Assembly (NCBI GenBank): GCA_010909165.1
Contig: MU008185.1
Location: 248,001 to 312,000 of the forward strand
Reading direction: 5' to 3'
Source of the DNA: Anthoceros angustus
Lineage: Eukaryota > Plantae > Anthocerotophyta
Length of the DNA stretch: 64,000 nt
The notes beneath the pieces are model-generated. The model did no database searches. It had not been told where the DNA came from and saw only the letters and a list, made by a program, of their open reading frames with translations. Position numbers and translations under genes: made by a program. Shown one piece after another: positions 6,967 through 61,223 of this stretch. Each line of letters starts with the position of its first letter. Position 1 is the stretch's first letter.

Positions 6967-8027
6967 TCCAGCTATCCACCAGCCTTGTTGTCGATGTTCA
7001 CTATGAAACCCTAAGGTTCCATCAGCTATTCACTGCATCAACGTTGATCTGGACATCGTGGAGTTCATCACTGCACATATCCGCTTCTAAAGTCGGACAT
7101 GCTGCTTCAACAGCTGAGTGCAAGCCTTTTCTCAGGCTTGGTACGAGGACTTCCAGTCTGACCAAGCAGCGGACAGTTGGCTGCAGAGGATCTGGTATGG
7201 ACAAGTAAGGAGACAAGCTGCACATGGTTGACGTGCAAGTTTGCCCTGACTTGATTATCTGAGTGCTTTTTGTTGTGAGATCAAGGTGAACGGGCGGGTA
7301 ACCACGTCCTCGGATGCCAAGCTCAGTTGTTGTATCCATTGTCCTCCACAATTCACTTGTTGTCTGCAACCCGAACTGTTTACCGTGCCTGATCAGGCTG
7401 ATCCTGCTTCACTTTCGCTTCTACAAATGTCTACCAGAGGCTTCCCTGGAGTGAGCCCTGTGCTCCCTATGAGCTGCACCTGGTGATGTATTGGGGTTGC
7501 TGCTCTGGGGCCTTTGTGTGTTCCAACATGGTGTTAGTGTCTTTGAGGTCGTTTGCCATCAACAACAACCCATCCCAACAACAAGCCATCCCGTTTCCAA
7601 GTTCTTCCAGAAGGCCTGTTTCAGTAGCGAATTGCTCTGTAGCAATCACAGTGGTTGTCTTCTGGAGCAGATGCTTGGCTATGACGCCGTCCGCATGTAT
7701 GCTGCCCATGCGAGGTTGGAGGATGCGTTGCATGAGTAGCTGCTCCAAACGCTTATGCCTTCCTTACTGAGGCACATGTTGAGAAAGGAAAAAAAGGGGT
7801 GTGGGTTTGGCTGGTAAGAGCAAAAAAGCCCCTAAATATATTTATCCCAGTTCGTTCCTCATAAAGAGTTTCCCGCAAAGTTAACCCGATTTAGTGATCA
7901 CCCTTTGTAAGACCAAACAGGGATCGGATCCTCTGATTCGAGGACAATGTGCCATGTTTCAAGGCATCCCGTCACTAAGTACCGGCGGAGCATCCGTTCT
8001 GCCAGTCAGTACAAATGGAATGAGGTT

Positions 8028-11000
8028 CACCGAGTGCGAGGAAGTCCAATCTTGCTTCCCTGAATTCAGGCTGAGAGACTTAGTGGCCCGTTAGAAGATA
8101 CCTGAGAGCAGTTCACAATTCCGAACTCTAAACCGTCCACAAGGGCTCGAAAGCTGGCCTCCACGATGGACGAGTGTGCCCCGACCTAGAAAGGCACCAG
8201 ACCTCAGAAACACGTCTCTAATGCAGATGTTTCGGGATGGCAGGAAGTCACATACCGTCGTCCACTTGCTACCATTGCCGTCGGTAAAGTCAATTGTGAC
8301 TCTGGTGGTGGACATCGTGCCCTTTCTAGCTACCAAAGGCTCTAACAGTCGGACTCGGTAGTCCGACAACTCTACTTGCTGAAGCTGTGGATAGTGCTCC
8401 TCCAGTGCCCGTCTGCTCTGATCAAGTTCCGTATTAATATGACAGCATTGCGGAAGGTCACAAGTTTTCCTCGGGGCTGAGAAGTTGGGTCACGAGACGT
8501 GTACCTCAGTGCATGGCTGAGGGCGTCGACAGGTCCATTACCTTCGGCAGCGCTCATCTGGTAATCTCGCGGGTGAGAAAATTCAGGAAGTAAATTCAAA
8601 CGCAGTTCACGTTTAACAAGAAGGGGCCGGACCAACCTGGACAGAACTACCAACGAGTAGCTTGACTAAAGCCTGGTTGACTTGTACATCATTCTCGGTC
8701 GGGCTCACCCCGTTTTTGCAATCAGGCTTCATGTCAGCTTCGCTACCCTGTGTCCCTCGATTGCTAGAGATCACGGAGAACTCCAACACACGAAAACTGA
8801 GATAATAGCACTTGTCAGCTCATGTGACGGACGTACAGAAAAGTGGTGAAAGGCTGTGATAATGGACAAAATGACTTGAAAATGCACTTACGGTTGTACA
8901 TAGTCCTTGCCCTTCCGTACAATCAGCATATCCACGGAAGCAGATGCATTCTCAAACGCACAACCCTAACGATGCAATCGCAATACGCTTATCAGAGGAG
9001 GTACATTTGTAAGCGACGAGAAACATTTTCTTACATTAACAGAAAGCAGAAACTTCACCGCTGAGAGATGAGATTACCTCATTCTCCATCTGCTTTATGC
9101 GAGCTAGCACGCTGCCAGCAACATCTTTATCCAGCACCAATCCTGCTTTCTCTGCCTAAATTCACATGAAATGTTCCACACCAATTCAGGACAGCGGTAA
9201 GGAAGATGCAGGGGTATTGTCCGGACATGATAGAAGAGCAGAATGTACCTTGTCCAAGATATTTCCTCGTCCGGAAAGCTCACTCACAACAGAGCGCATT
9301 GTGTTGCCCACGAGCGCGGGATCCATATGATTGTAACTCTCAGGCATCTGATGATGAAACATTGGTGACGATATATCTTTTGCGACATCAAATTGCAACA
9401 TCCCACTCTAAAGATTTATATGGACAAGCATACCTTACGAAGTGCTGCAACGTGAATCCCTCCTTTGTGTGCAAACGCGCTCGATCCTACATAAGGCTGT
9501 GAAGGTGACATTTCCTGTGCAGCAACTTCAGCTACAGTGCCAGCTATCTCTGCCAGTCGTGGTAGAAAGGCAGGTGGTATGCAGAGATGCCCAAGCTTGG
9601 CTTGCAAACCTCCTATGACACTCACCTTCGATGCAAGAGAAAGGAGGAGTGAGAACATCTAGAGGAAGCTGACAACTACTGCGAAGGGTTCGCGGAAGAT
9701 CAAAGAGCATCCAACAACAAAAGCCTCTGAATTCATACCAAGTTTGCATTTCCAGTGCGCTCTCCATAGCCATTCATGCAGCCTTGGACAAGAGATGCAC
9801 CACCTCTCACAGCTGATAGACTATTGGCCACAGCCATATCCGTATCATTGTGAGTATGGATACCCACCCTCACTTGGGGCCAATCTTTAAGTGCTGCTTT
9901 TACCTCTCGAGTCCTTGCCTGCATTGCACAAACTGTTGAAAGAGAATGCTCAAAACAGGGCAGACACAAAAATAGGCTTCTACCTCAATGTCCCAAGGCA
10001 TGGAGCCACCATTTGTGTCACATAGCACGACAACGTCAACTCCAGCTTTAGCTGCTGTTTGTAAGCAGTTCAGTGCATACTCCCTGAATAACACATCATG
10101 ATGAAATCACCTAAGTCTCTGGAGCCTGACTTGAAGAACAGCTTCCCGAAAGTAAACTAACTTGCCTGTTTGCAGTCATTCCGTCAAAGAAGTGTTCAGC
10201 ATCAAGCATGACCTCTCTCCCTCTGACCTGAATTGTAATACTTCGCTTCAGACAAAGGCTTCTGGGGAAGCCAACAGCTGCTGCTGAAGGGACACACGAC
10301 TGACCTTGAAATAAGTAACAGTATCGGCTATCATTCTCAAGTTCTCCTCGAGGGTTGTCTCTAGAACTCGGAACACTTGAGCATCCCAGGCCTATCACTT
10401 CCACAGGACGTTTCAATCGCTAGGGATGCATGAAGGTCGAACTGCTATAAAAACAATATAAGCCCAGCATACCTTGGCTACCAGTGTAATAACCGTGGCT
10501 TCACACGAAAGTAAAGCTTGAACATTTCTATCCTGTGATGTGCACCTTCGATTAATCGAATAATGCTTCAGCACATCAAACATGAAAGTTCACAAGCAAT
10601 TGACAGCATAAAAACCAAGCAGTACAGTCAGACCTCATCACATGAGGAATTTTTTCGACGAGTTGCTCCAAACGCAGCCAGCTTTGTTCGACCTTGTGAC
10701 TTCGAGACAACAGGTTCACAAAGGCTGAAAAAATCGGCATCTTTGGGGTTTGAACCTGGCCATCCTCCCTCTATGTACTCAACACCTACACAACAAGAAC
10801 GGCACTCTTCCTCAATAACGGACCGACCCTGCATCAATTGGGAGAGACACCCCTACCCGATGGAGCTTGCACTCAAACGTCCTGGGGCAACATAAGTAAA
10901 AACTGCTCCCAGTGACTGTCACAACCCTCTGATTTTGTGACGTCGCATCTCCAAACTGAACCAGAGGATGAAACTGAAGTCGTACCTAAGTCAACTAAAG

Positions 11001-11739
11001 CGCTGGCAATCTTCAGTTTATCGGCAAGGCTTAATGAGATTCCCACCATCTGCAAACACACAGGAACACTGCAGGTGATTGCACCGCTAACTCCAGCCAA
11101 CATGTGAAAATGAAAAGCGACAAAAGGTCACGCACCTGAGCCCCGTCTCGCAGCGTCGTATCATACATTGACACACGTGATCCTGTGGCACCGCCTTCAG
11201 CAACCCGCGGCTCCACATCAATGAAGGCCTGCAAATTGCCCCATTACCAGCATTCTTCTGTCAGAATTTCTAGCTTTGCTTTCATGCACTTGATTTCACG
11301 TACAGCCGCCAGCCCTGCCTTACGGTTGACTCAGCACGACTTCCGGAACTCTTCAAACCTGCAAGAAGGGGAGATCATACCAGCTGCGACTTTGCCGAAA
11401 TTGTCCCCAGTTGAGCCATTTCCGACAGCGTTTTCGCATGGAGCTCACTAAAAAAAACAAGGCAACATGTCAGCCTGCAGCTTGAGCAGCGCAAGCGGCG
11501 TAATGCTTTGGATTTACAATGCAGGTGCTTCCTGGATCAAGGCACATGTAAGGAACTAGTCTAAGAGGGTCATCGTCCAAGCTGCACCTGGATCGCAGCG
11601 GAGAAATGAACAAGGAGCACCGTCGCAGCGGAGGAATAAACGAGGAGGATCGTAAGCTGCCCGCGACGCAGGGGCTGCAGACAGACCTGTGAAGCCATGC
11701 ATCACACGACGGAGCTGGGCCAACAGAGGTGGCAGCCAT
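8028..11739 (-). CDS. cimA: Multi-exon citramalate synthase / LeuA-related (bacterial CimA-type) enzyme with probable plastid transit peptide
   Basis: Motifs in order across short GT-AG introns: [121 protein letters not shown]. The N-terminus [12 protein letters not shown] is Ser/Arg-rich. The start and last exon are approximate. Confidence 0.88.
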
Positions 11740-12931
11740 GGCGATCGTTGCACTGTAGCACACATTCACGACGCCCAATACTATGGACACTTATTACTTA
11801 TAGACTACCCATTGCAATCTTTTTCCCCCAATCGCGAAATATATACCTATGTATTTGGATTGCGGTCAGTTTTCTCTTTCAACTTCTCTCCCGCTCGCTT
11901 GTACCTCCCTCGACTCAAGGCCTACTCACATAGGCTTTAGCAACGGGATCCGTCCGTGGTAGGGGCGCTCCGTAGTTATGATGGACGGAGCTCCGTTGCT
12001 CCGTTTTTGTCAGCCCGTTTTTCACGTAAGGAAGAAGAAAAGAATTTTATTCAAGTCCTGTCATGGACTTGGTACTTAATAACTTGTACCATGGTCTGCC
12101 CAAGCTACTTGCACCAAGGGCATCCACTTCCTTTAGGCATCCCATCTAAGTATTGATCTAAGTGCAGGATGCTTAATAATGGTGTTCTTATAAAAATGTG
12201 TGCTCATTTGGCCTAAGCTATTTGGACCTCCCCGTTTATGCACTCGGGATACATTCCGGGTGCAAGGGGACAAATGGGAGACACACATGCACAAAAAGGC
12301 TTTGTTGCCCTTTATGAAGAGTGGTTTAGGGAAGGGAAGAGAAGAGCAGGGCCGAGCCTTGAAGTTAATGGGAAAAAGACATGTAACAAGTCTAAGACCT
12401 TGAGCCGTAGAGCGACGTCCTAGGATTCACCTATAGCACATATGATGTCATTGCGAGGAAGATGAAGATGGAATAACCTATATTCTTGTAAATTATGGTG
12501 AATTTATATGTCTTGCTGTTGACCCCATGCCATTCTGATTATGAAGATCAATCTTCATGATAAGAAAGCCAAAGCGTTAGTATCAAAGTCGTTTGGAGAG
12601 CAAAGGATACATGTTATTAGAAAAGCAGTAAAGTGGAATGGGACTAGGCTTACTCTATGCGTGAGTAGATGATACGTTTTGCCTTGGCTTGACTTGATAC
12701 ATTTGTCGAAATCTTTGTCACGGTTTTGTAGTTCCCCATAGTTGTAGCATATGGCTTATGGTTTATGGAGTCGTTCTGAGTTAGGGCATGCTTGACCTCG
12801 CTCGTTGTGTTTGTGTTCGTGAGACCACATTTATCTTGAACTGAACTTAACTACCTATCTTTAATATTATAACCAATTGAATAATCATAAACTAAGATAT
12901 ATATACATATAGGTAATACATATACATCAGG

Positions 12932-35132: not shown

Positions 35133-36989
35133 GCCCCCAAGATTGGCGCAAAACGCAGCGCTTAAGTTGAAGCGCTCAAGTTGAAGGCAGTCGATACAAC
35201 GTCCTGCATCCTCCTTCTCCCCGTCCTTCCTTCACTTTGTCTGTCAGAACCTCTTCTCTGAAAATATTACAGCAACCATGCTCTTCAAACTTGACCTCGG
35301 AACTTGCAACATGCACGCGCTCGTCTCAATATTCGTTCCCGAGACGAGCTCGGCTGCACTCAAGAAGGCCTCTCGACTAGCGCTTTGTCAATCACAGCCA
35401 AGCCTCTCCGTCTGCCTGCGTCCACGCTGTGCTTTTGAGGATAACTGCCTCGCAGGAGGAGGAAGAGCGGACAGCGGGCAGGCTCGGGAGCGGGGACTCA
35501 GGGCAACCGGCGGGGCAGGAAGAGGCAGCTCACAGGTTCAAACTTCTCAACAACGTCCTAGATAAGCTCTTGCAACAGCAGCACAGAACAGCAAAGCCGA
35601 AGGCGTCTTGGCAACTTCTCAGGAGACAGGTTTTTGCCGAGTCCGCTTGCATCGGACGCGCGCTCTCGCAAGCAGGTGCAATATGCTGATGCAATGACGG
35701 GGACACAGAATCCATGGTGAATTGGCATCGGTGTTTAGGACACCATGATTGGAACTTCTCGTCACCTGGTTCGGCATGAATCCCCTGTGCTTTGTTTTTT
35801 TCTTCGTACACAGCGGGCAGCTCTTCCCGCGGGCTACGCAGCGACGCTCCTCAAAGTAGGAGTGCTTTTAGCATACTTAGAGGATTACTTCGCCTGCGGG
35901 AAGAGCGAGCTGCCACCGGGAAGCCGGGCGAGGACGTCTCCGGGCGGGCGGTTGGACAAGGGGGAGGGAGAGGCACCCGGCCGTGCAGGACATAGCCCGA
36001 GGATTTTGCTACCCTTCGCACTTACTTCTTCGTGAGGGTTAGGTAACTGGTATCTGCCGTCACCAGGATGCAGGATTGTCCAGACTTAACAGATTCGTGT
36101 GCCGTGTGATGCTGTCATTGGAGCAAGCGCTTTGATTCTCGCAGGTGCTCAGGCAGCCGTTCACTTTCCCACGAGCCGGCCTTGCGTAATGCTCTCCCGC
36201 AGAGCAGGAAGCTGGCTCCGTTTGTGTTCACACGGAGGAGGAGGAACAGAAATGCGTTTGTTTACATATGTAATTATGTACATATACTGGCACGGACATC
36301 GGAGTCTGATGGTCAGAGGCTGTCAGCTGGTTATGCTTATAAGCAGGGTTTATTCCTGAGGGACATACATCTGCGAGGTGGGCGCTGCCCTCCACGTATG
36401 TATGTACATATGGGAGAGCACAGGGCACACACATGTGGTGCATGACGTGGCATGGAATGTCCTTGGCTTACTCCTACAGTCCACCCCCCCTAAATGGGAC
36501 TGGTTCGGAGTGCCTTTAGAGGTCCCATTAAGGGAGGTGTCCCGATTATATTTTCCCTATTTAAAAATAATAAAAATATTATAAACTCTAAAAAATCAAA
36601 AAATACCCAAAAAAAGAAAATTTTAAATTTTGATTGATAGGTTTCACTAAAAATAAATTTTACCACTTCTTTATATAGTTGTTTGAAAGCTAGCGTATGG
36701 CATACCAAAGAGGACAGAGGGGACGGACATTTTTTTTCTGCCGCAAAACTTTTGGTGTCCGGTTTGGTGACCCGACCGAAATGGGGTAGCCCAAAGGGGA
36801 CGCACCAAAGCGGCCACTTCGCGGTCACCGGATTTCAGAAAGGGAACTTTAGGGTTTTTTCCGACTCACTCTATGTGTTTTCTCCCACGGAACAAAAATT
36901 TTTGTTCCGCAACGCTCCTATTTAGGGTCCGTAGGCCTCATAGGCAAGCCACATGCCCGCTTTTAGGGTTCATGTGCTAAGAGGGTGGA

Positions 36990-39440
36990 GCATGGTTTAG
37001 GCGGGGGTTTAGGCAACCGATTTGGCGGGCGGGCGGGCTGCGGTGGCGGCGAGGCGGCGAGGCAAGGCGGGAGGCGGAGGCGGGAGGCGGCGAGGCGGCG
37101 AGGCGGCGAGGCGGGCGGGCAGGCGGCGAGGCGGCGAGCGGGCGGCGGGGCGCGGCGCGCGGCGGGCGGGCAGGCGGCGGCGGCGAGCGGGCGGCGAGCC
37201 CACCGCCACGGACGGGGCAGGCGGCGGCGAGGCGGCGAGGCGGGGCGGGTTTTCGCGGACCGGCGAGAAGGGCGGGCGGGCTGCGGTGGCGGCGAGGGAC
37301 GGAGGCGGGAGGCGGGCGGCGGCGGCGGCGGCGAGGGACGGAGGCGGGCAGGCGGCGAGGCGGCGAGGGGCGAGGCGGGCGGGCGGCGGGGCGAGGGACG
37401 GACGAGGCGCGGCCTTCACTGGGTGACGGACGGCGGCCAACCGCAGTAAGGAGAGGCGGCGAGGCGGCGAGGCGGCGAGGCGGGGCAGGCGGCGAGGCGG
37501 CGAGGCGGCGAGGCGGCGAGGCAAGGCGGGAAGGCCGGGGAGGCGGAGGAGGAAGGCGGGCGGCGAGGGACGGAGGCGGGGCAAGGCGGGCGGCAGGCGG
37601 CGAGGCGCCACGGCAACGGAGGCGGGCGTGGCGAGCGGGCGGGCGGCGAGCGGGCGGCGAGGAGGCGCCACGGTAGCCCTCCCCATCCTTGCACCAAGCC
37701 GCAACTAACCTCGCCCCTCATTCGGGTCGCGCCACGGCAACGGAGGCGGGCAGGCGGCGGCGAGCCCACCGCCACGGACGGGCGGAGGCGGGCGGCGAGG
37801 CGGCGAGGGGCGGGTTTAGGCGGCGAGGCAAGGCGGGCAAGGCGGGCGGGCGGCGGCGAGGCAAGGCGGAGGAGGGGCTGCGGCGAGGCGGAGGCGGGCA
37901 GGCGGGCGGAGGCGGGAGGCGAGGCGGCGAGGAGGCGGCGAGCGGGCGGCGAGGGACGGACGAGGCGCGGCCTTCACTGGGTGACGGACGGCGGCGAGGC
38001 GGCCACCGCAGTAAGGAGAGGCGGCGAGGCGGCGAGGCGGCGAGGCGGGGCGAGGCGGCGAGGCGGCGAGGCGGCGAGGCGGGGAAGGCCGGGGAGGCGG
38101 AGGAAGGCGGGCAGGCGGCGAGGCGGGGCGCGGGCGGCGGCGAGGCGCCACGGGCAACGGAGGCGGCGAGCGGGCGGGCGGCGGGCGGAGGAGGAGGAGG
38201 CACGTGGGCCCTCCCCATCCTTGCACCAAGCCGCAACTAACCTCGCCCCTCATTCCTTCCCCGCCCATGGTGATGCCGAATTGTTTGATGCTCATTTCTT
38301 TGCAAACGGCCGACACGCAGATGGTACTGGTGCCACCGCAGTATTATTGTAGGCTTCCTGCGGTTGTGGGCGGGATGGTGCACCGCCCACCCTCTCCTCC
38401 TCACATGCCGCAGCCGCAGCGCGCCTCGAGCGGCGGGGCGCCACGCTGGCAGGCGCCCTCATTGTGGCGGCGGGGCGCGGCGAGCGGGCGGGCGGCGAGC
38501 GGGCGGCGAGGCGGGCGGCGGGCAGGCGGCGGGCGGGCTGCGGTGGCGGCGGGCGGAGAAGGGCGGGCTGCGTTGAGGCAAAACACGGGCGGAGGCGGAG
38601 GAGGGGCTGCGGTGGCGGCGAGGGGCGGAGGCGGGCAGGCGGGCGGGCGGGCGGGGCGAGGCGGGCGGGCTGCGGTGGCGGCGAGGAGGCGGGCCTTCAC
38701 TCAGGTGCGGGCGGGCAGGCGGCGAGGCGGCGGGCGGGCGGGCGGGCGGGGCGGGCGGGCGGGAGGCGGGAGGCGGGCGGGCAGGCGGCGAGGGGGCAGG
38801 CGGGCGGCGGCGAGGCGGGCAGGCGGGCGGGCGTGGCGAGCGGGCGGCGAGCGGCGGCGAGGCGGCGAGTGCAGTCCTCCCCATCCTTGCACCAAGCCGC
38901 AACTAACCTCGTCCTCATGGTGGGCATGAATCTGCGTGCAAGGAGAGGCGGGCAGGCGAGCCCACCGCCACTTGCATGTGTGGGGCGGCGGGCGGGGCGG
39001 CGAGGCGGCGAGGCGGCGGGCGGCGAGGCAAGGCGGGGCGGAGAAGGGCGGGGCGGCGGCGAGGCAAGGCGGAGGAGGGGCTGCGGCGAGGCGGAGGCGG
39101 GCAGGCGGGGCAAGGCGGCGAGGAGGCGGCGAGGCGGCGGCCCTACCGGGCCGAGGGACGGACGAGGCGCGGCCTTCACTGGGTGACGGACGGCGGCGAG
39201 GCGGCCACCGCAGTAAGGAGAGGCGGCGAGGCGGCGAGGCGGCGAGGCGGGGCGAGGCGGCGAGGCGGCGAGGCGGCGAGGCGGGGAAGGCCGGGGAGGC
39301 GGAGGAAGGCGGGCGGGCAGGCGGCGAGGCGGGCGGGCGGGGCGGCGGCGAGGCGCCACGGGCAACGGAGGCGGCGAGGCGGGCAGGCGGGGCGGCGAGG
39401 AGGCGGGGCGGCGAGGAGGCGGGCGGGCTGCGGTGGCCCC
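36990..39440. repeat. G-rich array of GGCGAGGC/GGCG units with duplicated unique cassettes
   Basis: An 8-mer ggcgaggc run interleaved with cassette ccccatccttgcaccaagccgcaactaacctcg (x4: ~37681, 38213, 38880, 39441) and gggacggacgaggcgcggccttcactgggtgacggac (x3). Confidence 0.9.
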
Positions 39441-39499
39441 TCCCCATCCTTGCACCAAGCCGCAACTAACCTCGCCCCTCATTCCTTCCCCGCCCATGG

Positions 39500-40070
39500 T
39501 GATGCCGAATTGTTTGATGCTCATTTCTTTGCAAACGGCCGACACGCAGATGGTACTGGTGCCACCGCAGTATTATTGTAGGCTTCTGCGGTTGTGGGCG
39601 GGATGGTGCACCGCCCACCCTCTCCTCCTCACATGCCGCAGCGCAGCCTGCAGCCCATCGTGCATGTGTGGGGCAGCGGAGGAGGGTTCCACGATCTCCT
39701 CCGAGCTCACCCGATCCTAATATGTGGAGTGAGTTGTTTCTGTGTCTTATGACCCCAAGAAGCCAATGCATCCTTTGTCCTACGAGGAGCTTGATGCGCT
39801 TTTGCAGCATGCGGAGGACCACAACGACCTCATCCGCCACATAGAGAACTACCCTTGACTTCAAGTTCTTTTCGAGCCGAGGAACGTGGTCGCAGTGTAT
39901 TTGACCGGACTCGACTTCCTATCAGAGTGCCTTCCGTGTCGGAAGCGCACTATTTCATGCATACCCATTTTGATGGGTGGCCATTGGGTCCTAACGATCA
40001 CCGTGAGGCCTCGCGTCCAAGCACCCGAGTCACCGGAGGACTTCAAGTCGTGGATGGCCAAGTTTCACCC
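39500..40070 (-). pseudogene. Ulp1/C48 SUMO-protease-like remnant
   Basis: Across frameshifts: DLKSSGDSGAW..TVI, YTATTFL, HWLLGVIRHRNNSLHILGS (cf. HWxLxVI...hLDS) and PQKP..N..CG (cf. PQQxNxxDCG). Confidence 0.55.
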
Positions 40071-40939
40071 GACGGCTTGACTCACGTGCACGGCCGCCTC
40101 GACGCTTATCGCCCCTCCCGGATTTCATCTCAACGCCTTCTACGAATTGGACGACGCCAACCATGTCTTGTGGGAGGAGATGAACGACCTCTACATCATC
40201 GAGGGCGGTGATCATGGGGTTAGATCGGGGGGTCATGTGCTTTAGGCACCGTGGCGAGGGTTTTGATAGGACTTGATGTACGAGGCCTTTACGGTTTAGA
40301 TTTGTAGGTGTCTTCGCACCCGCTTCCCACGCTTTGACTTGACCAAATTTTGACGCTTCCTCTTCGTGTATTCTCACCACTCGCCGATATCCGTGCCCAC
40401 GTTTTCAACTTGGCCTCGGTTCATGCTTGCCGCGCATCGTGTTCCCTCGTGCATTTTGGCCCGCTTCCATTCTCCTTGGCCTTGTCAACCCCGCCCCTTT
40501 CCATTCTCCTTGGCCTTGTCAACCCGGCTTTTGCCCCGGCTTTCCATGTCCACGCTTGCTTATTAATTGACAACCCATACAGGCTGCCTTCTTTCAGTGT
40601 GATTTGGGTCCGCGGAACTCGCTCTTCACAGAGGTTCGTCGCTTTGATAGCTGCTGCCTCCACTTCAAGGGGAATGCGGTTTCACACAAAGGTGATTCCG
40701 ACACGCGTCTCCACAATTTTCATGCACCATTGTCGGAAGGTCAGGACAGAACTTGCAGGGAATGTCTCTGCCCATGCCTTGCGGCTGGACCGCGCGAGAA
40801 ACCGGTTGCTGGACGCAGGAGGCTATTCCATGAGCCCTTGCGTCATGTGTCCACGCGGTGGCCCCTCCGGCCCTCACGTTTCTATCCTATCGGCGGTGAT
40901 GCCCTGTGCCCGTCGCCTTCCCTATCCATGTCTCATTGC

Positions 40940-41100
40940 CTCCCGCTTGCACCACATGCCCTAGTCGCCTGCCACCGCGACGCACCTCATATGAAAAGCG
41001 CTCAAGAGGTTAAGGGCTCTCCATGTCCACAGTGTGCAGTGCATTCCACTCCCACACCATCTCCTGCAGAGGATCCCCGTCGCCCGCAATACAAGCACAC
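40940..41100 (-). pseudogene. PHD/ePHD-like zinc finger remnant
   Basis: VCLYCGRR...GVECTAHC...(frameshift) AFHMRC...GMWCKR gives the C-x2-C, C-x3-C, H-x2-C, WC spacing. Confidence 0.5.
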
Positions 41101-41109
41101 TGCAACCTA

Positions 41110-43420
41110 TGCGATACATGTCCGGAGGTAATTTGTACACTTCAAGCCCGCCAGACGCCATGTCCTCGCCACTTGCATGTCCTACAAAACATTTGTCGTC
41201 ATCAAGAATCGCTGGTGTTCACATTCGAGACGGTCTTGGTGGCGTTCACTTACCCTCACAAGAATGCTATCGGAGGAAGCGGTGGCACCTCCGGTGCAAC
41301 ATTGCGGCGATCGTGGTCCGGGGACATAGTAGTCGTTGTCGCCCTCCTCGCCTACCCCATATGCGGCGGCCCTACCGGGCCGGCCCGCTCCTCCTCTGGA
41401 AGGCCTCCGCGGACGTGGCCAGCTATGTCATCGCCTCCGACCTCATTTTCCTCACCCTGTGCAAGTTCCACACCCGAACGAAAGTCGCCAGCTCTGTCCT
41501 CATGGTGGGCATGAATGCTGCGTGCAAGGAATGTATGTGCCAAGGGTTCGTGGTATCCAACTCACGGCTGTCCTGCAGCTCCAACATGTACCTCTTGTAC
41601 AGGAAGCCCCACTTCTCCTTGACGCCCTCCGGAAGTGCTCGATCGCCTCACACCCACGTATCCACCCACCAACCACGCCGTTATGTCTGGCACGGGCTCC
41701 GGCGTCCGGAAATTGCGCAGCCCGCATTCGGCAAGCAGAATGCGGCAAATCCCTTTCACATGACAACCAGTATCCACCTTACCTGATTGTGCACCGATGG
41801 CCCCCGAATGAAGTTCCTACCGTTCTCTCGCGGCCTCGCTGGTTCAGGTCCTCCTCAACTAGGTTGTGCTCCGCAGCGAAATCGGACCGAATCCGCTGCG
41901 GGTGCCCAAACCTACCGCCCGCCAGACGCCTTGTAGATTGTTCCTGCCCGCTTGTTGTCCTCCAGCACCGCCCACGTTATGTAGTGCGTTGCCCCATCTA
42001 TGGCCGCGTGCACCCTGAAGTGGAACATGTACATCTTGTCGACGCAAAGACAACACTCGCACCGTTAGCTTGCGTGCCTTGTGCCGCGCTATCGACTCGG
42101 CGACCACCATGTGCTCCAAGTTCCGCACACTCACAGTCCATGTGCCACATGTACATCGTGTGTATTGCACCGCGAACGCGCGCATGCGACCTCATTTCCA
42201 TGGCCTCCTACCGCATGGCTCGCAATCTTGCCGTCACACCGCCTCGGCCCCGCCTCCCTCCGCCCTCCGGAAGTGCTCGATCGCCTCCGCCTCGCACAAT
42301 CCTCACTCCCGCTCACACCGCCGCGTGATGGTCACATTTTGTAGGATGAGGTTGCGACGCCTTCTATTGTTCTCGGCGGACCCGCAGCCCTCTCCATCCG
42401 GCACCGTGCGGCCACCTCCTCAACGTCGCGGTGCACATCCCGGCTCGCTGCGAGCCCTTTCAATGTCCGCCCGCCTCCTCCTCCGCCTCTGCGATGTTCC
42501 TCAAAGTCTCCACTTGAAAGGGCCCGCCGACTGCCCTTCCCTCTCCCGCCTCCGCCCTCGCCCTCTGTTTGATGTCGAGGGCTGTGATCGCCTCCACCTC
42601 CGACACTTCGCCTCCCTTCCTCCATCGGATCCCCCCTCCCGTCTCCGCGCCTCGGCCCCTCCATCTCCCCTTGCAGCGACGCCCCATCTCCCCTCCGCCC
42701 GCCCCACTCCGCCATCCACCCGCGCCCGGCCTCACCAAGACCCTCCGCCTCCCGCCATCCTCTCATTGCCTGCCCCGCCCCTCCGCCTGCCTCCGCCTGG
42801 GCCTCGGCCCCGCCCTCCGCCTGCCCCTCCCTCCGGTTCCGCACACGGCCCCGCCTCCCCTTCCTCCCACCCGCGCGCCCACGGCCCCGCCCACCCCGCC
42901 CTCGCCCCGGATGGCGCCACGGCCCCGCCCCTCCGCCTTCCTCCTTCCCGCCCGCCCGCCTGCGCCCTCCGCCTCCCCTCCTTCCCGCCCGCCTCGCCCC
43001 ACTCCGCCTCCCTCCTCCGCCCGCCTCGGCCCCGCCCGCCGCCCCTCCATCGAACCCCATCGTCCGACTCTGCTCACGCCGCCATCCACCCGCGCCCCGC
43101 TATCACCCTCATCTCCTCCTTCCCCGCACACCGCCTCCTCCGCCCGCCTCCGCCATCAATCCGACCATCGCCAGGCGAACCCAACCCGCCCGTTCTCTGC
43201 GTCCCCATGATCGCCGCAGTGTTTCGCGACTGGGCCTATCCTCACCACGCCTGCCTCGCTGCGAGCCCTTTCAATGTCCGTCCGCCCTCCTCCGCCCCTC
43301 TGCGATGTTCCTCAAAGTCTCCACTTGAAAGGCGGCTGCCGGCCGTTCCCTTCCCTCTCCGCTCGCCCTCTGTTTGATGTCGAGGGCTGTGATCGTCTCC
43401 ACCTCACGCCCCGCTTTCCT
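41110..43420 (-). pseudogene. Intron-containing IS3/IS481-like (integrase-core, eukaryotic IS3EU-type) DDE transposase remnant
   Basis: Motifs in order across frameshifts and GT-AG introns: MWHMD; HAAIDGATHYITWAVLEDNKRAGTIY; FGHPQRIRSDFAAEH; FIRGPSVHNQ|AIEHF; ELQDSRELDTTNPWHIHSLHAAFMPTMRTELATFVRVWNLHRVR; YGVGEEG; GGLEVYK. Confidence 0.8.
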
Positions 43421-44110
43421 CCCCTTCCTCCATCGGATCCCCCCTCCCGTCCTCTCCGCGCCTCGGCCTCCATCTCCCCTTGCAGCCGCCCCATCTCCCC
43501 TCCGCCCGCCCGCCCCACTCCGCCTCGGCCTCCATCTCCCCTCCGCCTCCTCCGCCATCCTCTCATTGCCTGCCCCGCCCCTCCGCCTCTGCCTCGCCCG
43601 CCTGGGCCCTCGGCCCCGCCCTCCGCCCGTCCCTCCCTCCGGTTCCCTTGCAGCCCCCCTCCCCTTCCTCCCACCCGCGCCCGCCTGCCCACCCGCGCCC
43701 TCCGCCTCGCACCCGGATGGCGCTCACGGCCCCGCCCCTCGCCCCTTCCTCCTTCCGCTCCGCGCCCTCGCCCGCCCTCGCCCTCCTCCGCCCCTCCGCC
43801 CCGCGCCCTCGCCCTCTCCGCTCCCCTCCCTCCCTCCCTCCGCTCCGCGCCTCGGCCCCTCCGCCTCCCTCCGCCAGACGTCAGGCCCCGTTCACTTTGC
43901 CATCCACCCGCGCCCTCGTCATCACCCTCATCTCCCCTCCTTCCCCACCGTCTTAGCCCTCATCGCGCCCGCCCGCCTCCGCGCCATCAATCCGACCATC
44001 GCCAGGCGAACCCAACCCCGTTCTCTGCGTCCCCATGATCACTGCGGTGTTTGGCGTACTCGGGCCTATCCTCCCTCCCTCCGCCCTCGCCCTCTCGTTG
44101 CGTGGTCTCC
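42430..44110. repeat. C-rich (G-rich on - strand) array, ~820 bp higher-order duplication
   Basis: Cassettes ctgcgatgttcctcaaagtctccacttgaaag...gatgtcgagggctgtgatcg (~42489 and 43300) and ccatcaatccgaccatcgccaggcgaaccc (~43152 and 43984) sit in ccgcc/ccgccc runs. Confidence 0.88.
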
Positions 44111-55499: not shown

Positions 55500-58400
55500 T
55501 TGCCATGCGGGTTAGGCGGTCGCCCGCCTCCCCATGGAGGCGGGAGTAAAGCCGAGGTCGATCAAGGAGGGGCGATTGCCGCCGAGACCGAGGCCGAGGG
55601 GAGGGCATCGTGCCTCCCCATGGAGAAGGAGTCGGGCGGGGCGCCTCCCCATGGCCATGGCGATGGCGGGGCGCCTCCCCATGTCCATGGCGACGGAGGG
55701 CACGCCTCCCCATGGAGAGGCGGCGGTGGCGCCATCCCGCAAGGCCGGCGCAATTGGAAACAACGACGCAAAGGCGCGGCGGGCGGGCGGGAGTAAAGCC
55801 GAGGTCGATCAAGGAGGGGCGGGAGTGATGGAGAAGGAGACAAGCGCGGTGGCGGGAGGCGGGGAGGGGAGGGAGGCGGCGGCATGGTGCCCGCACTTGC
55901 CGGGCGGAGGGCACAGCCACTCTTCCTTGGCGGGAGGGCGGCGGAGGGCGGCAGGAGAAGGGGAAGCGAGGGGAGAGGCCTCCCCATGGCCATGGCGACG
56001 GCAGAGGGGCGGCGCGGCGGGCAGCAGGGGCGGGAGGCATCGTGCCTCCCCATGGAGAAGGAGGCGGAGGGGCGGCCTCCCCATGGTGGCGGCGGCAGCG
56101 GCGGGGCCCAGCAATGGCGCAGCGGGGAGGGGAGGCCGCCTCCCCATGTCCATGACGGAGGCGAGGGGCGAGCCGCCCGCCTCAAGGAAAGGGGCAGGTG
56201 GCCTCCCGATGGAGGCGCAGGCGGGGGCGGGGGCGGCAGCGGGGAGGGCACCGCCTCCCCATGGAGAAGGAGCGGGCGGGGCAGAGGCGCCTCCCGATGG
56301 AGGCGGCGGCAGGCGCCTCCCGGCGGCGGCGGGAGGGGAGGGGGCCTCGCCTCCCCATGGCCATGGAGACGGAGGCGGGAGGGCGAGCCGCCCGCCTCAA
56401 GGAGGGGGGCTGTGGCCTCCCGGCGATGGAGGCGCAGGGGAGGGCATCGTGCCTCCCCATGGCCATGGGCGGCAGAGGCGCCCGCCTCCCCATGGAGAAG
56501 GAGCGGGCAGAGGCGCCTCCCCGAACGATGGAGGCGGCAGGGGGAGACTGTGCCTCCCCATGGAGGCGGGCGGAGGGGAGGCGCCTCGCCTCCAAGGAAC
56601 GGTGGCCTCCCCATGGAGAGGCGGGCGGGGAGGGCGGCAGGAGGCGGGGAGGGGAGACTGCCTCCCCATGGAGAAGGGGCGGGCGGCAGTGCAGGCGCCT
56701 CGGAGATGGAGGCGGCAGTGGCCTCCCCATGGCCATGGCGCAGCGGGGAGGGCACTGCCTCCCCATGTCCATGGCGACGGAGGCGGGAGGCGAGCCGCCC
56801 GCCTGAGGAGGGGGGGCCAGGCCTCCCGGCGATGGAGGCGGCAGCGGCGGGTGCCCAGGCGGCAGTGCGGGGAGGGCCGCCTCCCCATGGAGAAGGAGTC
56901 GGGCGGGCAGAGGCGCCCCCGGCGATGGAGGCGGCGGCAGCGGGGGAGGCGCAGCGGGGAGGGGAGGCCGCCTCCCCATGGCCATGGAGGCGGGGGCGGA
57001 GGGCGAGCGCCGCCTCAAGGAAAGGGGCGGGGCGGTGGCCTCCCGGCGGCGCGGAGGCGGCGGTGGCGCGGGGAGGGCGAGGGGAGGGCGGCGCCTCCCC
57101 ATGGTGATGGACGGAGGCGGCGGGGAGGCGGGGCGCGGGGAGGCGAGGGGAGGCGGGAGGGGCGAGCCGCCCGCCTCGAAAGGCAGTGGCCTCCCGGCGA
57201 TGGAGGCCGCAGCGGGGAGGGCAGCCTCCCCATGTCCATGGCGAGGGGAGGAGGAGGCACGCCTCCCCATGGAGAAGGAGTCGGGCGGGCAGAGGCGCCT
57301 CAACGATGGAGGCGGCGGCAGTGCGGGGAGGGGAGACTGCCTCCCCATGGCGGCGGAGGCGGGCGGAGGGGAGGGCAAAGGCGCCCGCCTCAAGGAAAGG
57401 GGCGGGGGCGGCCTCCCGGCGATGGAGGCGGGCGGGCGGGCGGCGGCAGTGGGGAGGGGAGACTGCCTCCCCATGGAGAAGGGGCGGGGGGCAGAGGCGC
57501 CTCCCCGGAGATGGAGGCGGCGGGCGGCAGTGGCCTCCCAGCTGGCGCAGGGGAGGGCAGCCTCCCCATGTCCATGGCGACGGAGGCGGAGGCGAGCCGC
57601 CCGCCTGAGGAGGGGGGGCCAGGCCTCCCGGCGATGGAGGCGGCAGCGGCGGGTGCCCAGGCGTGGCGCGGGGAGGAGGAGCGGGGAGGCGCCTCCCCAT
57701 GGAGAAGAGTCGGGCGGGGCGGGGCGCCTCCCGGCGATGGGCGGCGGCAGGGGCCCAGGCGTGGCGGAGGCGCCTCCCCATGGCCATGGGCGGGGCGTGG
57801 AGGCGAGCCGCCTCCCCATGGAGAAGGGGCGGGGCATGGCCTCCCCTCGGCGATAGGCGGCGGTGGCGGCGGGGAACCCCAGGCGGGGCGGGGAGGCGAG
57901 CCGCCTCCCCATGGTGATGGACGGAGGCGGCGGGGAGGCGGGGCGCGGGGAGGAGGCGGAGGCGGGAGGGCGAGCCGCCCGCCTCGAAAGGCAGTGGCCT
58001 CCCCGGCGATGGAGGCCGCAGCGGGGAGGGCAGCCTCCCCATGTCCATGGCGAGGGGAGGGCACGCCTCCCCATGGAGAAGGAGTCGGGCGGGCAGAGGC
58101 GCCTCCCCGAACGATGGAGGCGGCGGCAGTGCGGGGAGGGGAGACTGCCTCCCCATGGCGACGGAGGCGGGGCGGAGGGGCGGGCAGAGGCGCCCGCCTC
58201 AAGGAAAGGGGCGGGCAGGCCTCCCGGCGATGGAGGCGGGGCGGGGCGGCAGGCGGAGGCGAGCACAAGGGGAGGAGGAGGCTGCCTCCCCATGGAGAAG
58301 GGGCGGGGGGCAGAGGCGCCTCCCCGGAGATGGAGGCGGCGGGCAGAGGCGCCTCCCAGCTGGCGCAGGGGAGGGCAGCCTCCCCATGTCCATGGCGACG

Positions 58401-58850
58401 GAGGCGGAGGCGAGTCGCCCGCCTGAGGAAAGGGGCAGTGGCCTCCCCGGCGGAGGCCGCAGCGGCTGGGTGCCCGGCGGCGGGGAGGGCACGCCTCCCC
58501 ATGGAGAAGGAGTCGGGCGGGCAGAGGCGCCCCCGGCGATGGAGGCGGCAGGCGGCGGGGCGTGGAGGCGCAGCGGGGAGGCCGCCTCCCCATGGCCATG
58601 GAGGCGGGGGCGTGGAGGCGAGCCGCCTCAAGGAAAGGGGCGGGGCGCCTCCCCGGCGATGGAGGCGGCGGTGGCGCGGGGAACCTGCAATGGGCGGGGA
58701 GGGCACCGCCTCCCCATGGTGATGGACGTGGAGGTGGGCCGGAGCGAGGAGCCACGGTGAGGAGACGTGGGAGGGCAGTTGCCTCCCCACGCGATGGCGG
58801 GGAGGCACGCCTCCCCATGGCGAGGGGAGAGGGAGCGGAGCATTGCGCAT
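55500..58850. repeat. G-rich satellite built on GCCTCCCCATGG
   Basis: Roughly 40 copies (by eye) of (g)cctccccatg(g) separated by variable purine-rich linkers such as agaaggagtcgggcggg, ccgcctcaaggaaagggg and cctcccggcgatggaggcg. Confidence 0.92.
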
Positions 58851-58889
58851 TGGAGGAGGAAGGCAACCCCGCTTTGGGGACGACGGGTC

Positions 58890-61223
58890 GCTGAGGACGA
58901 GGGCGATTGCCGCCGAGGCCGAGGCCGAGGGGAGGAGGAGGAGGATGGGCTGCCTCACGCCGGGCCGCCGGAGGCCGAGCTCGGCATGGCGGTGGCGGTG
59001 GCGGTGGCGGAGGCCGCCATGCCCGACCCCGAGGTCGGCCATGGTGGCGGGAGGGCGATCGCCGCCGCCGAGACCGAGGCCGACGGAGGGCCCGGCGATG
59101 GCGGGATCGAGGCGGGATGCGGAAGGCGTGGAGGCGGGGCGGGGAGGCACGCCTCCCCATGGAGACGGAGGCGGCGGGGCGGGCGGCGGCGATCTCAGGG
59201 AGTGGACCGAGCGCGCCACCGCTTGAGGAAGGCCGTGTATGGGAGGAATAACCGCCCATCGGTGGCGCCATCTCGACGTGGAACGGAAGCAGCAGATTAG
59301 GCGGAGGCTCGGGCGCGGGGAGGAGGAGCGGAGGCGGACGGCGAGCTCACGGCGGTGGAGGCGGAGGCGAGCCGCCTCCCCATGGCCATGGAGGCGGAGG
59401 CGGAGGCGGAGGAGGAGGTGGGAGCAACCTGTGACGGTGGCGGAGCGGAGGCCATGTCGGAAGAAGATGGAGAGCGGAGTGCGCCCAACCCCAACTCCGC
59501 GGAGGGCGAGCACAAGGGGAGGAAGCGCGATTACGAGGAGTCGGACACGGTCCGGCGGAAGCGCCGCGGCCAAGGCGGGTGCCTCCGACGCCCAATGCCC
59601 GGACGCGGCTTGAGGACGGGCGGAGGGCGATTGCCGCCGAGGCCGAGGAGGAGGAGGCTGCCTCACGCGCCGGGCCCGAGCCGAGGCCGAGCTCGGCATG
59701 GCGGTGGCGGAGGCGAGTCGCCCGCCTCCGCCCAATGCCCGACCCCGAGGTCGGCCATGGTGGCGGGAGGGCGGCGATCGCCGCCGAGACCGAGGCCGAC
59801 GGAGGGCCCGCGATGGCGGGATCGAGGCGGGATGCGGGCGTGGAGGCGGCGGCGGGGCGGAGGCGGAGGCGGCGGGCGGCAGCGGCGGCGGGCGGCGATC
59901 TCAGGGAGTGGACCGAGCGCGCCATCCGGTTGAGGAAGGCCGTATGGGAGGAATAACCAGTTCCATCGGTGGCGCCATCTCGACGTGGAACGGAAGCAGC
60001 AGATTAGGCGGAGGCTCGGGCGCGGGCGGCGGAGGAGGAGCGGAGGCGGCGGGGCGCGGGCGGCAGGCGGCGGTGGAGGAGATCCGGCACAGAGGAGGAG
60101 GAGGAGGAGGAGGAGGAGGAGGGTGGGAGCAACTCCGCTGGCGGTGGCGGAGCGGAGGCCATGTCGGAAGAAGATGGAGAGCGGAGTGCGCCCAACCCCA
60201 ACTCCGCGGAGGGCGAGCACAAGGGGGAGGAAGCGCGACTACGAGGAGTCGGACACGGTGTCCGAAGTGGAAGCGCGGCGGCCAAGGCGGGTGCCTCCGA
60301 CGCCCAATGCCCGGACGCGGCTTGAGGACGGGCGGAGGGCGATTGCCGCCGAGGCCGAGGGGAGGAGCGGAGGCGGGTGCCTCACGCGCCGGGCCCGAGC
60401 CGAGGCCGAGCTCGGCATGGCGGTGGCGGAGGCCATGTCCGCCGCCGCCATGCCCGACCCCGAGGTCGGCCATGGTGGCGGGAGGGCGGCGATCGCCGCC
60501 GAGACCGAGGCCGACGGAGGGCCCGCGATGGCGGGATCGAGGGCGGGATGCGGGCGTGGAGGCGGCGGTGGCGGAGCGGAGGCGGAGGCCATGGTGGCGG
60601 AGGCGGCGATCTCAGGGAGTGGACCGAGCGCGCCAGTCCGGTTGAGGAAGGCAGTTTATGGGAGGAATAACCAGTTCCATCGGTGGCGGCATCTCGACGT
60701 GGAGCGGAAGCAGCAGATTAGGCGGAGGCTCGGGAGGCAGGGCTGCGGAGGGGAGGAGCGGGAGGCGCTGCTGCGCGAGCTCACGGCGGTGGAGGGCAGC
60801 ATCCGGCGGCACACCGTAGGAGGAGGAGGAGGAGGAGGAGGGGTGGGAGCAACTGCAGCTGACGGTGGCGGAGCGGAGGCCATGTCGGAAGAAGATGGAG
60901 AGCGGAGTGCAGCTCCAACCCCAACTCCGCGGAGGGCGAGCACAAGGGGGAGGAAGCGCGACTACGAGGAGTCGGACACGGTGTCCGAAGTGGAAGCGCG
61001 GCGGCCAAGGCGGGTGCCTCCGACGCCCAATGCCCGGACGCGGCCTGCTGGAGGCGGGGACGCGGCCAACCGGGACAGGAGAGCGATGAGCCGCGGAATG
61101 CTCGACGCCGTCGAGGCCATGGAGGGCACAATTAAGGTTCTCCGGCAGATGATCAAGCGCATGGAGGACGAGGGAAGTAGGCGGCGTCGTCATCCCTTGT
61201 GCTCGAGTTGCATCACCAGTTAG
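58890..61223 (+). pseudogene. Triplicated (~715 bp x3) coding-like unit of a second element gene, ending in a coiled-coil-like tail
   Basis: RLRKAVYGRNNQFHRWRHLDVERKQQIRRRLG and GRKRDYEESDTVSEVEARRPRRVPPTPNARTR occur three times. The unique ending is AMSRGMLDAVEAMEGTIKVLRQMIKRMEDEG...*. Confidence 0.5.

Follow-up and report, generated by a model that had tools for sequence, protein, structure and literature searches.

An intact nuclear gene of Anthoceros angustus related to bacterial TIGR00977-type citramalate synthases, with orthologues in green algae, a clubmoss and ferns

Gene structure and transcripts

The window analyzed (the whole stretch of 64,000 nucleotides from contig MU008185.1 of Anthoceros angustus) contains on its minus strand an intact, transcribed, nuclear and intron-rich plant gene with a coding sequence running from 11739 to 7975. 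The gene is made of 19 exons, with 24–192 coding nucleotides each, and 18 introns, 17 of them GT-AG and one GC-AG (10165-10084). The joined exons form a single open frame of 1938 nt that encodes a protein of 645 amino acids. A spliced contig of 2079 nt from a public run is 100% identical to the window and reproduces all the junctions of the gene, its length being accounted for as 12 + 1938 + 129 nt. The gene is also represented by spliced transcripts in several related organisms, and the contigs of these relatives, likewise obtained from public runs, agree on the junctions, including the 103-nt skip of the last intron. An earlier note on this DNA had placed many short GT-AG exons between 8028 and 11739. 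The spliced structure and the start hold, but one intron is GC-AG and the coding sequence ends at 7975 and not at 8028, because there is a last intron of 103 nt (8101-7999) followed by a short last exon. Two other splicing possibilities were ruled out by the spliced contigs: an exon-17 acceptor at 8415, as the one used is at 8412, 3 nt downstream, and an exon 18 reading on to a stop at 8066, as the extra last intron intervenes.

Concerning the conservation of the locus, a related genome differed from the window by up to 2.6% in the listed core exons versus about 6.5% across the locus, and the listed indels were all intronic. The boundaries of exon 11 were identical in an unrelated land-plant contig (L086). 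A Pfam scan of five neighbouring long open reading frames gave nothing relevant.

Exon 1 (11588-11751) contains a short 5′ untranslated region, the ATG (11739-11737) and the leader codons 1-50, as indicated by contig pieces 11588-11751/11761 and by translation. Exon 2 (67 nt, 11381-11447) encodes the remainder of the leader and is supported by its AG/GT sites, the frame and the depth bins; besides, according to the spliced-contig record exon 1 and the piece in exon 5 must lie 226 nt apart, which is the sum of exons 2, 3 and 4 plus a 2-nt alignment shift. The catalytic TIM barrel starts in exon 3 (11136-11228), with a ten-residue motif and the Arg-Asp substrate/metal site (joint 11049/11136, piece 11136-11227). 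Exon 3 is followed by exon 4 (10986-11049; joints 11049/11136 and 10783/10984, the latter with the 2-nt shift), exon 5 (10634-10785; contig joints), exon 6 (10473-10532; joints 10531/10633 and 10390/10472) and exon 7 (10305-10391; record-length arithmetic on the spliced contig). Exon 5 carries a 14-residue motif (10780-10739) and matches TIGR00977 positions 37-81 with 38.8 bits, while exon 7 matches positions 104-132. Exon 8 (10166-10227) encodes DAEHFFDG (10203-10180) and ends at the GC-AG intron, where the contig joint (10082/10165) has a 4-nt ambiguity within which no GT donor is possible. Exon 9 (9984-10083), with LCDTNGG, is supported by the spliced contig and by a match to TIGR00977 positions 154-186. 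Exon 10 (9739-9918), with GIHTHND and its metal-binding His-x-His, is supported by the spliced contig and by matches to Pfam HMGL-like (65 bits) and TIGR00977 (67.6 bits).

Exon 11 (9434-9625), of the post-barrel subdomain, includes AFAHKGGIH (9478-9452) and matches TIGR00977 with 54.1 bits. Exon 12 (9249-9347), with VSELSGRGN (9287-9261), is supported by the spliced contig and TIGR00977, exon 13 (9078-9155) by the joints 9154/9248 and 8964/9077, and exon 14 (8892-8965) by the spliced contig. The latter supports also exon 15 (8637-8796), which contains a variable linker and the start of the C-terminal regulatory domain, and exon 16 (8505-8557), with a ten-residue motif (8548-8519). Exon 17 (8256-8412; joint 8412/8505) runs from DYRVR (8363-8349) to WTT and matches TIGR00977 positions 447-494. 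The motif WTTVG is split by the intron as WTT|VG (8256/8185). Exon 18 (8102-8185) includes an 11-residue motif, IVEAS (8167-8153) and the end of the LeuA_dimer-type domain, with a weak Pfam match to LeuA_dimer; its end at 8102 derives from a side length of 82 and from the depth bins. Exon 19 (7950-7998) provides the final seven codons and the stop TAG (7977-7975), with a 3′ untranslated region extending to about 7846 and a depth of 49 nt in the bin 7950-8080. All the bacterial-type signature motifs quoted in the earlier note were thus present on the minus strand in the places given for them.

N-terminal leader

In the window protein, 94 residues precede YDTTLRDG, compared to 62–139 in the full-length green orthologues and 5–7 (13 in one case) in bacterial homologues. 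Nothing in the bacterial proteins corresponds to this leader, while similar extensions occur in all the full-length green orthologues. Its first 60 residues contain 25% Ser plus Thr and 5% Asp plus Glu, and from this Ser/Thr-rich, acid-poor composition the leader is a probable plastid transit peptide. The domestication of the gene with introns and a transit peptide, proposed before, is in agreement with the 18 spliceosomal introns and the N-terminal extension, the transit function being predicted from composition.

Family placement

In an exon-by-exon scan against NCBIfam models, eight exons gave matches and TIGR00977, the citramalate synthase equivalog, was the best model for each. The matches were collinear, spanning positions 37-494 of 526, and summed about 303 bits with the exons scored separately, the curated cut-off of 450 bits applying to whole proteins. 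Full-length orthologues surpassed this cut-off (Selaginella 595, Adiantum 610, Klebsormidium 568 and Spirogloea 585 bits). The same orthologues scored about 185–290 bits with the LeuA models TIGR00973 and PRK00915, under their cut-offs of 517–748, and 130–147 bits with the Leptospira-type CimA model NF042433, under its cut-off of 950, while their scores with homocitrate-synthase models were far under the cut-offs. With the window exons, the LeuA models either scored under TIGR00977 or gave no match. Collinear alignments of the window protein covered about 545 residues at 42–48% identity for 80 bacterial genes (the best 80 loci), and identity to the Selaginella and fern proteins was 74–78%, so a chance resemblance is excluded.

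The domain order HMGL-like barrel, HCS_D2 subdomain and LeuA_dimer was found in the window protein. HMGL-like gave 65 bits on exon 10, HCS_D2 on exon 11 and LeuA_dimer on exon 18 were weak Pfam matches, and the protein is collinear over its full length with proteins having all three domains. When near-invariant positions were defined as the columns at least 95% conserved among 84 bacterial homologues, 103 out of 106 (97%) were kept in the window protein, the regulatory domain included. They comprise the catalytic or metal-binding residues R100, D101, E236, H237, T269, H300 and H302 and 96 others. The green clade has nonetheless fixed differences from the bacterial consensus, like E106V adjoining the TLRDGAQ site. 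After the first strand-helix unit, the window protein carries IEGGWPG and not the LeuA-type IEAGFP, which in a printed alignment is found at the corresponding site of the solved bacterial LeuA 3EEG; a motif search by regular expression missed it in the four LeuA-type outgroup rows. A PDB search yielded no close solved structure, the best match being a homocitrate synthase with 172 bits.

Phylogeny, origin and distribution

Three trees without cyanobacterial sequences were built: two were quick runs under C20, and the third, on 44 rows, used LG+F+G4 and ultrafast bootstraps. In the three trees, the green clade was monophyletic (SH-aLRT 100; 100/100 in the bootstrap tree) and the window protein was sister to Selaginella plus ferns. 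The branching order within the clade tracks the species tree, and vertical inheritance across the green lineage is what these sequence comparisons indicate. The green clade, with a long stem branch (0.44–0.62), was nested among bacterial cimA-type proteins, beside Chloroflexota proteins with Anaerolineae names, while LeuA and a haloarchaeal enzyme formed the outgroup, at the end of a branch of 1.9–2.3 substitutions per site. As the earlier note held, the protein belongs to the bacterial TIGR00977 CimA clade, apart from plant isopropylmalate synthases (IPMS) and methylthioalkylmalate synthases (MAM), and its ultimate origin is bacterial. Concerning the endosymbiotic or horizontal acquisition contemplated before, a simple endosymbiotic transfer gains no support, because the nearest bacteria in this cyanobacteria-free sample were Chloroflexota-named. 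No cyanobacterial relatives were found among the best 80 loci of a genome-contig scan nor in the plasmid collection. An Atlas search was uninformative on origin, and the ten cluster representatives that were labelled had only Gammaproteobacteria names.

Orthologues were found in the prasinophyte Pyramimonas, in six genera of streptophyte algae (Mesostigma, Chlorokybus, Klebsormidium, Mesotaenium, Spirogloea and Closterium), in the clubmoss Selaginella and in the ferns Adiantum and Ceratopteris. No protein from mosses, liverworts or seed plants was among the best matches; seed plants seem to have lost the gene, as apparently did mosses and liverworts. With many green algae, a clubmoss and ferns all carrying it, it is an old gene of the green lineage and not a novelty of one genome, and the peculiarity to this plant suggested in the earlier note is not sustained. 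The wide presence in green algae and bryophytes that would remove the novelty was largely found, in many green algae though in no moss or liverwort among the best matches. The family was already in the databases but apparently unstudied, the window gene being one more orthologue. Some orthologues (Klebsormidium, Adiantum) are named (R)-citramalate synthase in UniRef, many family members are automatically named 2-isopropylmalate synthase by JGI and NCBI (Klebsormidium), and our literature search found no paper on a TIGR00977-type enzyme in the green lineage.

The green orthologues, exemplified by Selaginella LOC9643899, share with the window protein 57–78% identity, the leader-plus-core layout and a C-terminal NCS..GC end; the species of the window was absent among the full-length database proteins, and its protein branches outside Selaginella plus ferns. 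Concerning the bacterial enzymes of TIGR00977 type, the window protein is collinear with them over the full length at 42–54% identity, with the same three domains, the same AEGNGPV motif and a further 27 residues of motif sequence in common. Unlike them, it carries a leader of 94 residues and is encoded in the nucleus by a gene that has 18 introns and no operon context; in addition, its green clade has a long stem and has fixed a few substitutions. The bacterial relatives occur in ilvB-ilvN-ilvC-cimA and cimA-leuA-leuB-leuC-leuD operons, in the latter case beside a separate canonical leuA. Genes of TIGR00977 type are annotated as cimA in Streptomyces, Azospirillum, Monoglobus and Anaerolineae, and plasmid-borne homologues carry the NCBI annotation cimA with an isoleucine-biosynthesis GO term.

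Possible function

The functional name of TIGR00977 rests on a few bacterial enzymes, one of which is presumably GSU1798 of Geobacter sulfurreducens, in line with citations in PMC2749216 and PMC3150298. The window gene probably encodes a TIGR00977-type ("Geobacter-type") citramalate synthase that would be plastidial and serve a route to isoleucine. The substrate, regulation, location and pathway role that we infer are as follows. From pyruvate and acetyl-CoA the enzyme would form (R)-citramalate, its catalytic core being a metal-dependent, HMGL-like TIM barrel with the Arg-Asp of TLRDG, the Glu-His of DAEH, the Thr of CDTNGG and the His-x-His of HTHND. Feedback control, probably by isoleucine, would be exerted through the C-terminal LeuA_dimer-type domain, and the 94-residue leader would direct the protein to the plastid. 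There, isopropylmalate isomerase and dehydrogenase could convert citramalate to 2-oxobutyrate, the precursor of isoleucine in this scheme, without threonine deaminase. As judged from sequence, the likeliest function of the gene would be in a plastid citramalate route. The gene would have been taken from a bacterium before chlorophytes and streptophytes diverged, with vertical descent and a subsequent loss that concerns seed plants and, it appears, also mosses and liverworts.

The alternative that best withstands the data, although we consider it unlikely, is a shift of the green clade to a different 2-oxo acid or a different role, such as organic-acid accumulation or specialised metabolism, its product being citramalate or a homologue not intended for isoleucine. 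The long stem branch and the fixed substitutions, which lie close to the active site as well as in the regulatory domain, would fit such a shift, as would the fact that apple citramalate goes to esters as well as to isoleucine (PMC7826400); yet the near-invariant bacterial positions are almost all kept, also in the regulatory domain, and conservation of the core exons is seen when related species are compared. Less probable still is a second 2-isopropylmalate synthase of the leucine pathway that has retained the fold. LeuA does have the same fold and catalytic residues, and this is the name that JGI and NCBI give to many members of the family, but the orthologues reach 568–610 bits with TIGR00977 and stay far from the LeuA cut-offs, canonical LeuA is separated by the long branch mentioned above, bacterial genomes have a separate leuA adjoining the cimA-type gene, and it would be less parsimonious for a pair of isoenzymes to have been retained for a single step ever since green plants arose. 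Bacterial contamination or a recent genome-specific transfer, to which only the bacterial character of the nearest non-plant relatives could point, is ruled out for practical purposes by the 18 spliceosomal introns, the spliced RNA of several related organisms, the intron positions shared with another land plant, and the orthologues in green algae, a lycophyte and ferns in species-tree order.

The textbook route to isoleucine in plants depends on threonine. To our knowledge, the only plant citramalate synthase described is that of apple, a recent IPMS derivative. If the citramalate synthase interpretation is true, the green lineage would ancestrally have had a second way into isoleucine synthesis, which was lost later. 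Its candidate enzyme is old, conserved and provided with a regulatory domain, and it persists in lineages ranging from prasinophytes to ferns, while no seed-plant protein was among the best matches. Going further, and with less confidence, green algae, hornworts, lycophytes and ferns may have a working, threonine-independent citramalate route in the plastid, based on an enzyme whose donor would be a Chloroflexota-like bacterium and whose arrival would predate the chlorophyte-streptophyte split, while seed plants would have lost the route and apple would have re-invented the activity from IPMS. The apple enzyme MdCMS is an IPMS derivative without regulatory domain that forms citramalate for isoleucine (PMC7826400). 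It belongs, together with plant IPMS and MAM, to the same superfamily as the window enzyme, for which the same type of reaction is proposed, a Claisen-type condensation between acetyl-CoA and a 2-oxo acid. They are, however, of the LeuA lineage, whereas the window enzyme is of a separate, older, bacterial-type lineage and, unlike MdCMS, has its regulatory domain intact. The CimA of Leptospira interrogans (PDB 3BLE) and the archaeal (R)-citramalate synthases resemble the window enzyme in the proposed reaction, the TIM-barrel core and the LeuA_dimer-type, isoleucine-binding regulatory domain, but Leptospira CimA is of another subfamily, as reflected in the NF042433 scores (130–147 bits versus 950), and the haloarchaeal enzyme goes with the LeuA outgroup.

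Gene model and transcript support

The motifs from which the earlier note had recognized a bacterial CimA/LeuA-related gene were all found in their place in the minus-strand translation of 7900-11900, and its observation of the gene was sound. Exons were chained from a three-frame read-out, the coding pieces being joined through AG/GT sites, and the 16 core exons yielded an uninterrupted frame, collinear with 80 bacterial genes at 42–48% identity over about 545 residues. Transcript support was obtained by comparing contigs of public runs with 7950-11850. The run of organism A contained a 2079-nt contig that was 100% identical to the window and consisted of exons only; a spliced form identical in layout occurred in the runs of two related organisms (95–99% identical), and a fourth run contained the unspliced genomic copy of a relative. 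The contigs matched every hand-chained junction except one acceptor, which lies at 8412, not 8415. They also uncovered two leader exons (11739-11588 and 11447-11381) and a final intron of 103 nt (8101-7999), followed by a last exon of 7 codons with the stop at 7977-7975. The 2079-nt contig was thus accounted for exactly (12 nt of 5′UTR, 1938 nt of CDS and 129 nt of 3′UTR). The intron at 10165-10084 (minus strand; donor cag/gcaagt) has a joint that is ambiguous by 4 nt, and in this range only a GC-AG reading is possible; it has the sole non-GT donor of the gene and was confirmed by spliced contigs of three organisms. The final model comprises 19 exons and 18 introns, and encodes 645 residues. 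The joined protein was used for local alignments and trees, while database searches were run exon by exon.

Family assignment

In the exon-wise NCBIfam scan, the equivalog model TIGR00977 (citramal_synth) was the top model for every matching exon, with collinear matches covering positions 37–494 of 526, while the LeuA, homocitrate-synthase and Leptospira-CimA models gave lower scores or no match. The bacterial CimA-type assignment proposed from the motifs was right. Among Pfam families, HMGL-like matched exon 10 (65 bits), and weak matches were obtained for HCS_D2 on exon 11 and LeuA_dimer on exon 18. The full-length orthologues of Selaginella, Adiantum, Klebsormidium and Spirogloea scored 595, 610, 568 and 585 bits, respectively, with TIGR00977 (cut-off 450), versus 185–288 bits with LeuA models (cut-offs 517–748) and 130–147 bits with the Leptospira CimA model (cut-off 950).

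The window protein is 74–78% identical to the Selaginella and fern orthologues and 52–54% to the best bacterial proteins. It keeps 103 of the 106 columns whose conservation across 84 bacterial homologues reaches 95% or more, including R100-D101 (TLRDG), E236-H237 (DAEH), T269 (CDTNGG) and H300/H302 (HTHND). Its IEGGWPG motif is common to the nearest bacterial group, whereas the solved LeuA structure 3EEG shows IEAGFP at the aligned site. No close solved structure was found in the PDB, where the best match was a homocitrate synthase (172 bits) and a plant MAM/IPMS chain reached 116 bits.

Distribution in the green lineage

Full-length eukaryotic relatives were reached from an exhaustive search with exon 11. 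A word-index search with a Spirogloea protein as query and a second one with nine aligned streptophyte sequences gave one and the same set. Orthologues were found in the streptophyte algae Spirogloea (three copies), Closterium (several), Mesotaenium, Klebsormidium, Chlorokybus and Mesostigma, in the land plants Selaginella, Adiantum and Ceratopteris, together with four fern-like transcripts, and, by cluster look-up, in the prasinophytes Pyramimonas parkeae and P. obovata. In UniRef, the proteins of Klebsormidium and Adiantum are already named (R)-citramalate synthase. Further eukaryote-like sequences with N-terminal extensions were P0033 and the cluster P0168/P0169/P0280. This cluster is a eukaryote-like branch of the green clade, represented by one NCBI WGS record (LFIK01) and by dozens of Logan/ENA contigs reaching 92 kb; its source may be a green alga with a small genome, frequent in environmental samples. 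The Closterium models P0003, P0166 and P0170 are much longer (760–1091 aa) than others of the family, and P0003 was matched twice by the query exon, which suggests that gene prediction fused tandem copies or that the protein is internally duplicated.

Mosses, liverworts, seed plants and core chlorophytes were not represented by name among the best 120 matches of either word-index search, where orthologues from these groups, if present, would be expected to rank above the bacterial matches. Within this word-based and length-limited search, the result points to a probable loss of the gene in the four groups.

The genomic contig of another land plant (L086:1-2100, Logan SRR33208241) carries the gene with 78–88% identity in exons 11, 12, 14 and 15. 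The introns of the gene can be considered old, since the exon boundaries of that contig are identical to those of the same four window exons.

Phylogeny and origin

Three trees were built, two by quick search under LG+C20 (110 and 71 rows) and one under LG+F+G4 with 1000 ultrafast bootstraps (44 rows). LeuA of E. coli and Bacillus served as the root throughout, joined by a haloarchaeal citramalate synthase in both C20 trees and by a bacterial LeuA adjoining a cimA-type gene in the 71- and 44-row trees. Supports of the 44-row tree were read after correcting a shift of node labels along the root path caused by re-rooting.

The three trees were in agreement. The green sequences formed one clade (SH-aLRT 100; 100/100 in the bootstrap tree). 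With 71 and 44 rows this clade consisted of two groups, the streptophytes and one containing Pyramimonas; with 110 rows the split was unresolved. Within the streptophytes, land plants formed a clade (SH-aLRT 95–98; 97/100), in which the window sequence was sister to Selaginella plus ferns, a placement that fits a bryophyte. In the C20 trees, the sister of the green clade was a bacterial group with named members from Anaerolineae/Chloroflexota (SH-aLRT 90 with 110 rows, 95 with 71). Under LG+F+G4 this immediate link received only 64/82, and support was 90–98 for the wider group that also takes in further Chloroflexota (Dehalococcoidia) and one Dormiibacterota sequence. The endosymbiotic origin considered earlier is unsupported, not refuted, because the trees took in no cyanobacterial sequence.

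N-terminal leader and selection

Ahead of YDTTLRDG, bacterial homologues have 5–7 residues (13 in one) and the window protein 94, the first 60 of which contain 25% Ser+Thr, 10% Arg+Lys and 5% Asp+Glu. Full-length green orthologues have leaders of 62–139 residues with similar composition. These features fit an organelle transit peptide. Plant branched-chain amino acid synthesis is located in plastids, and from this location together with leader length and composition we infer plastid targeting of the window protein.

Compared to the genomic contigs of a relative, about 6.5% of sites differ over the locus. Differences affect 24 of 941 sites (2.6%) in the listed core exons versus 17 of 266 (6.4%) in the leader exons, and all listed indels are intronic. 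Judged from these differences, the catalytic core is under purifying selection, and the leader evolves faster, in the manner of transit peptides.

Bacterial gene context and predicted function

The bacterial genes occur in arrays of the types ilvB-ilvN-ilvC-cimA and cimA-leuA-leuB-leuC-leuD, and also adjoining leuC. The bacterial cimA-type gene therefore belongs to branched-chain amino acid synthesis and is separate from the canonical leuA alongside. Plasmid-borne bacterial copies carry the PGAP annotation cimA and a term for isoleucine biosynthesis. On the basis of these arrays and annotations, the plant enzyme most likely synthesizes (R)-citramalate, which would be converted to 2-oxobutyrate and then isoleucine, with feedback control predicted to act through the retained C-terminal domain. 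In the bacterial operon at L089:6001-12461, a TIGR00977-type gene stands immediately before a second HMGL-like/LeuA_dimer gene of the canonical leuA type, after which come leuB, leuC and leuD, a natural case of both synthases adjoining.

Relation to known enzymes and sequence context

The only plant citramalate synthase found described in the literature was apple MdCMS, an enzyme derived from IPMS that lacks the regulatory domain and, in its authors' tree, falls outside both microbial CMS and plant IPMS (PMC7826400). No paper was found on a TIGR00977-type enzyme in the green lineage (green algae, bryophytes including hornworts, Selaginella, ferns), nor is one mentioned in the two Anthoceros genome papers. 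The novelty suggested for the Anthoceros genome was not borne out, since orthologues across green algae, Selaginella and ferns are already in databases; it is a typical member, passed on by vertical descent, of a gene family long established in the green lineage.

Elsewhere in the window, GC content is very high (up to 0.78) in the blocks 36000-44000 and 55500-60000, where both GC skew and AT skew are strong. Their long overlapping ORFs on both strands matched no Pfam family, and the blocks are probably compositional artefacts or repeats, not genes.
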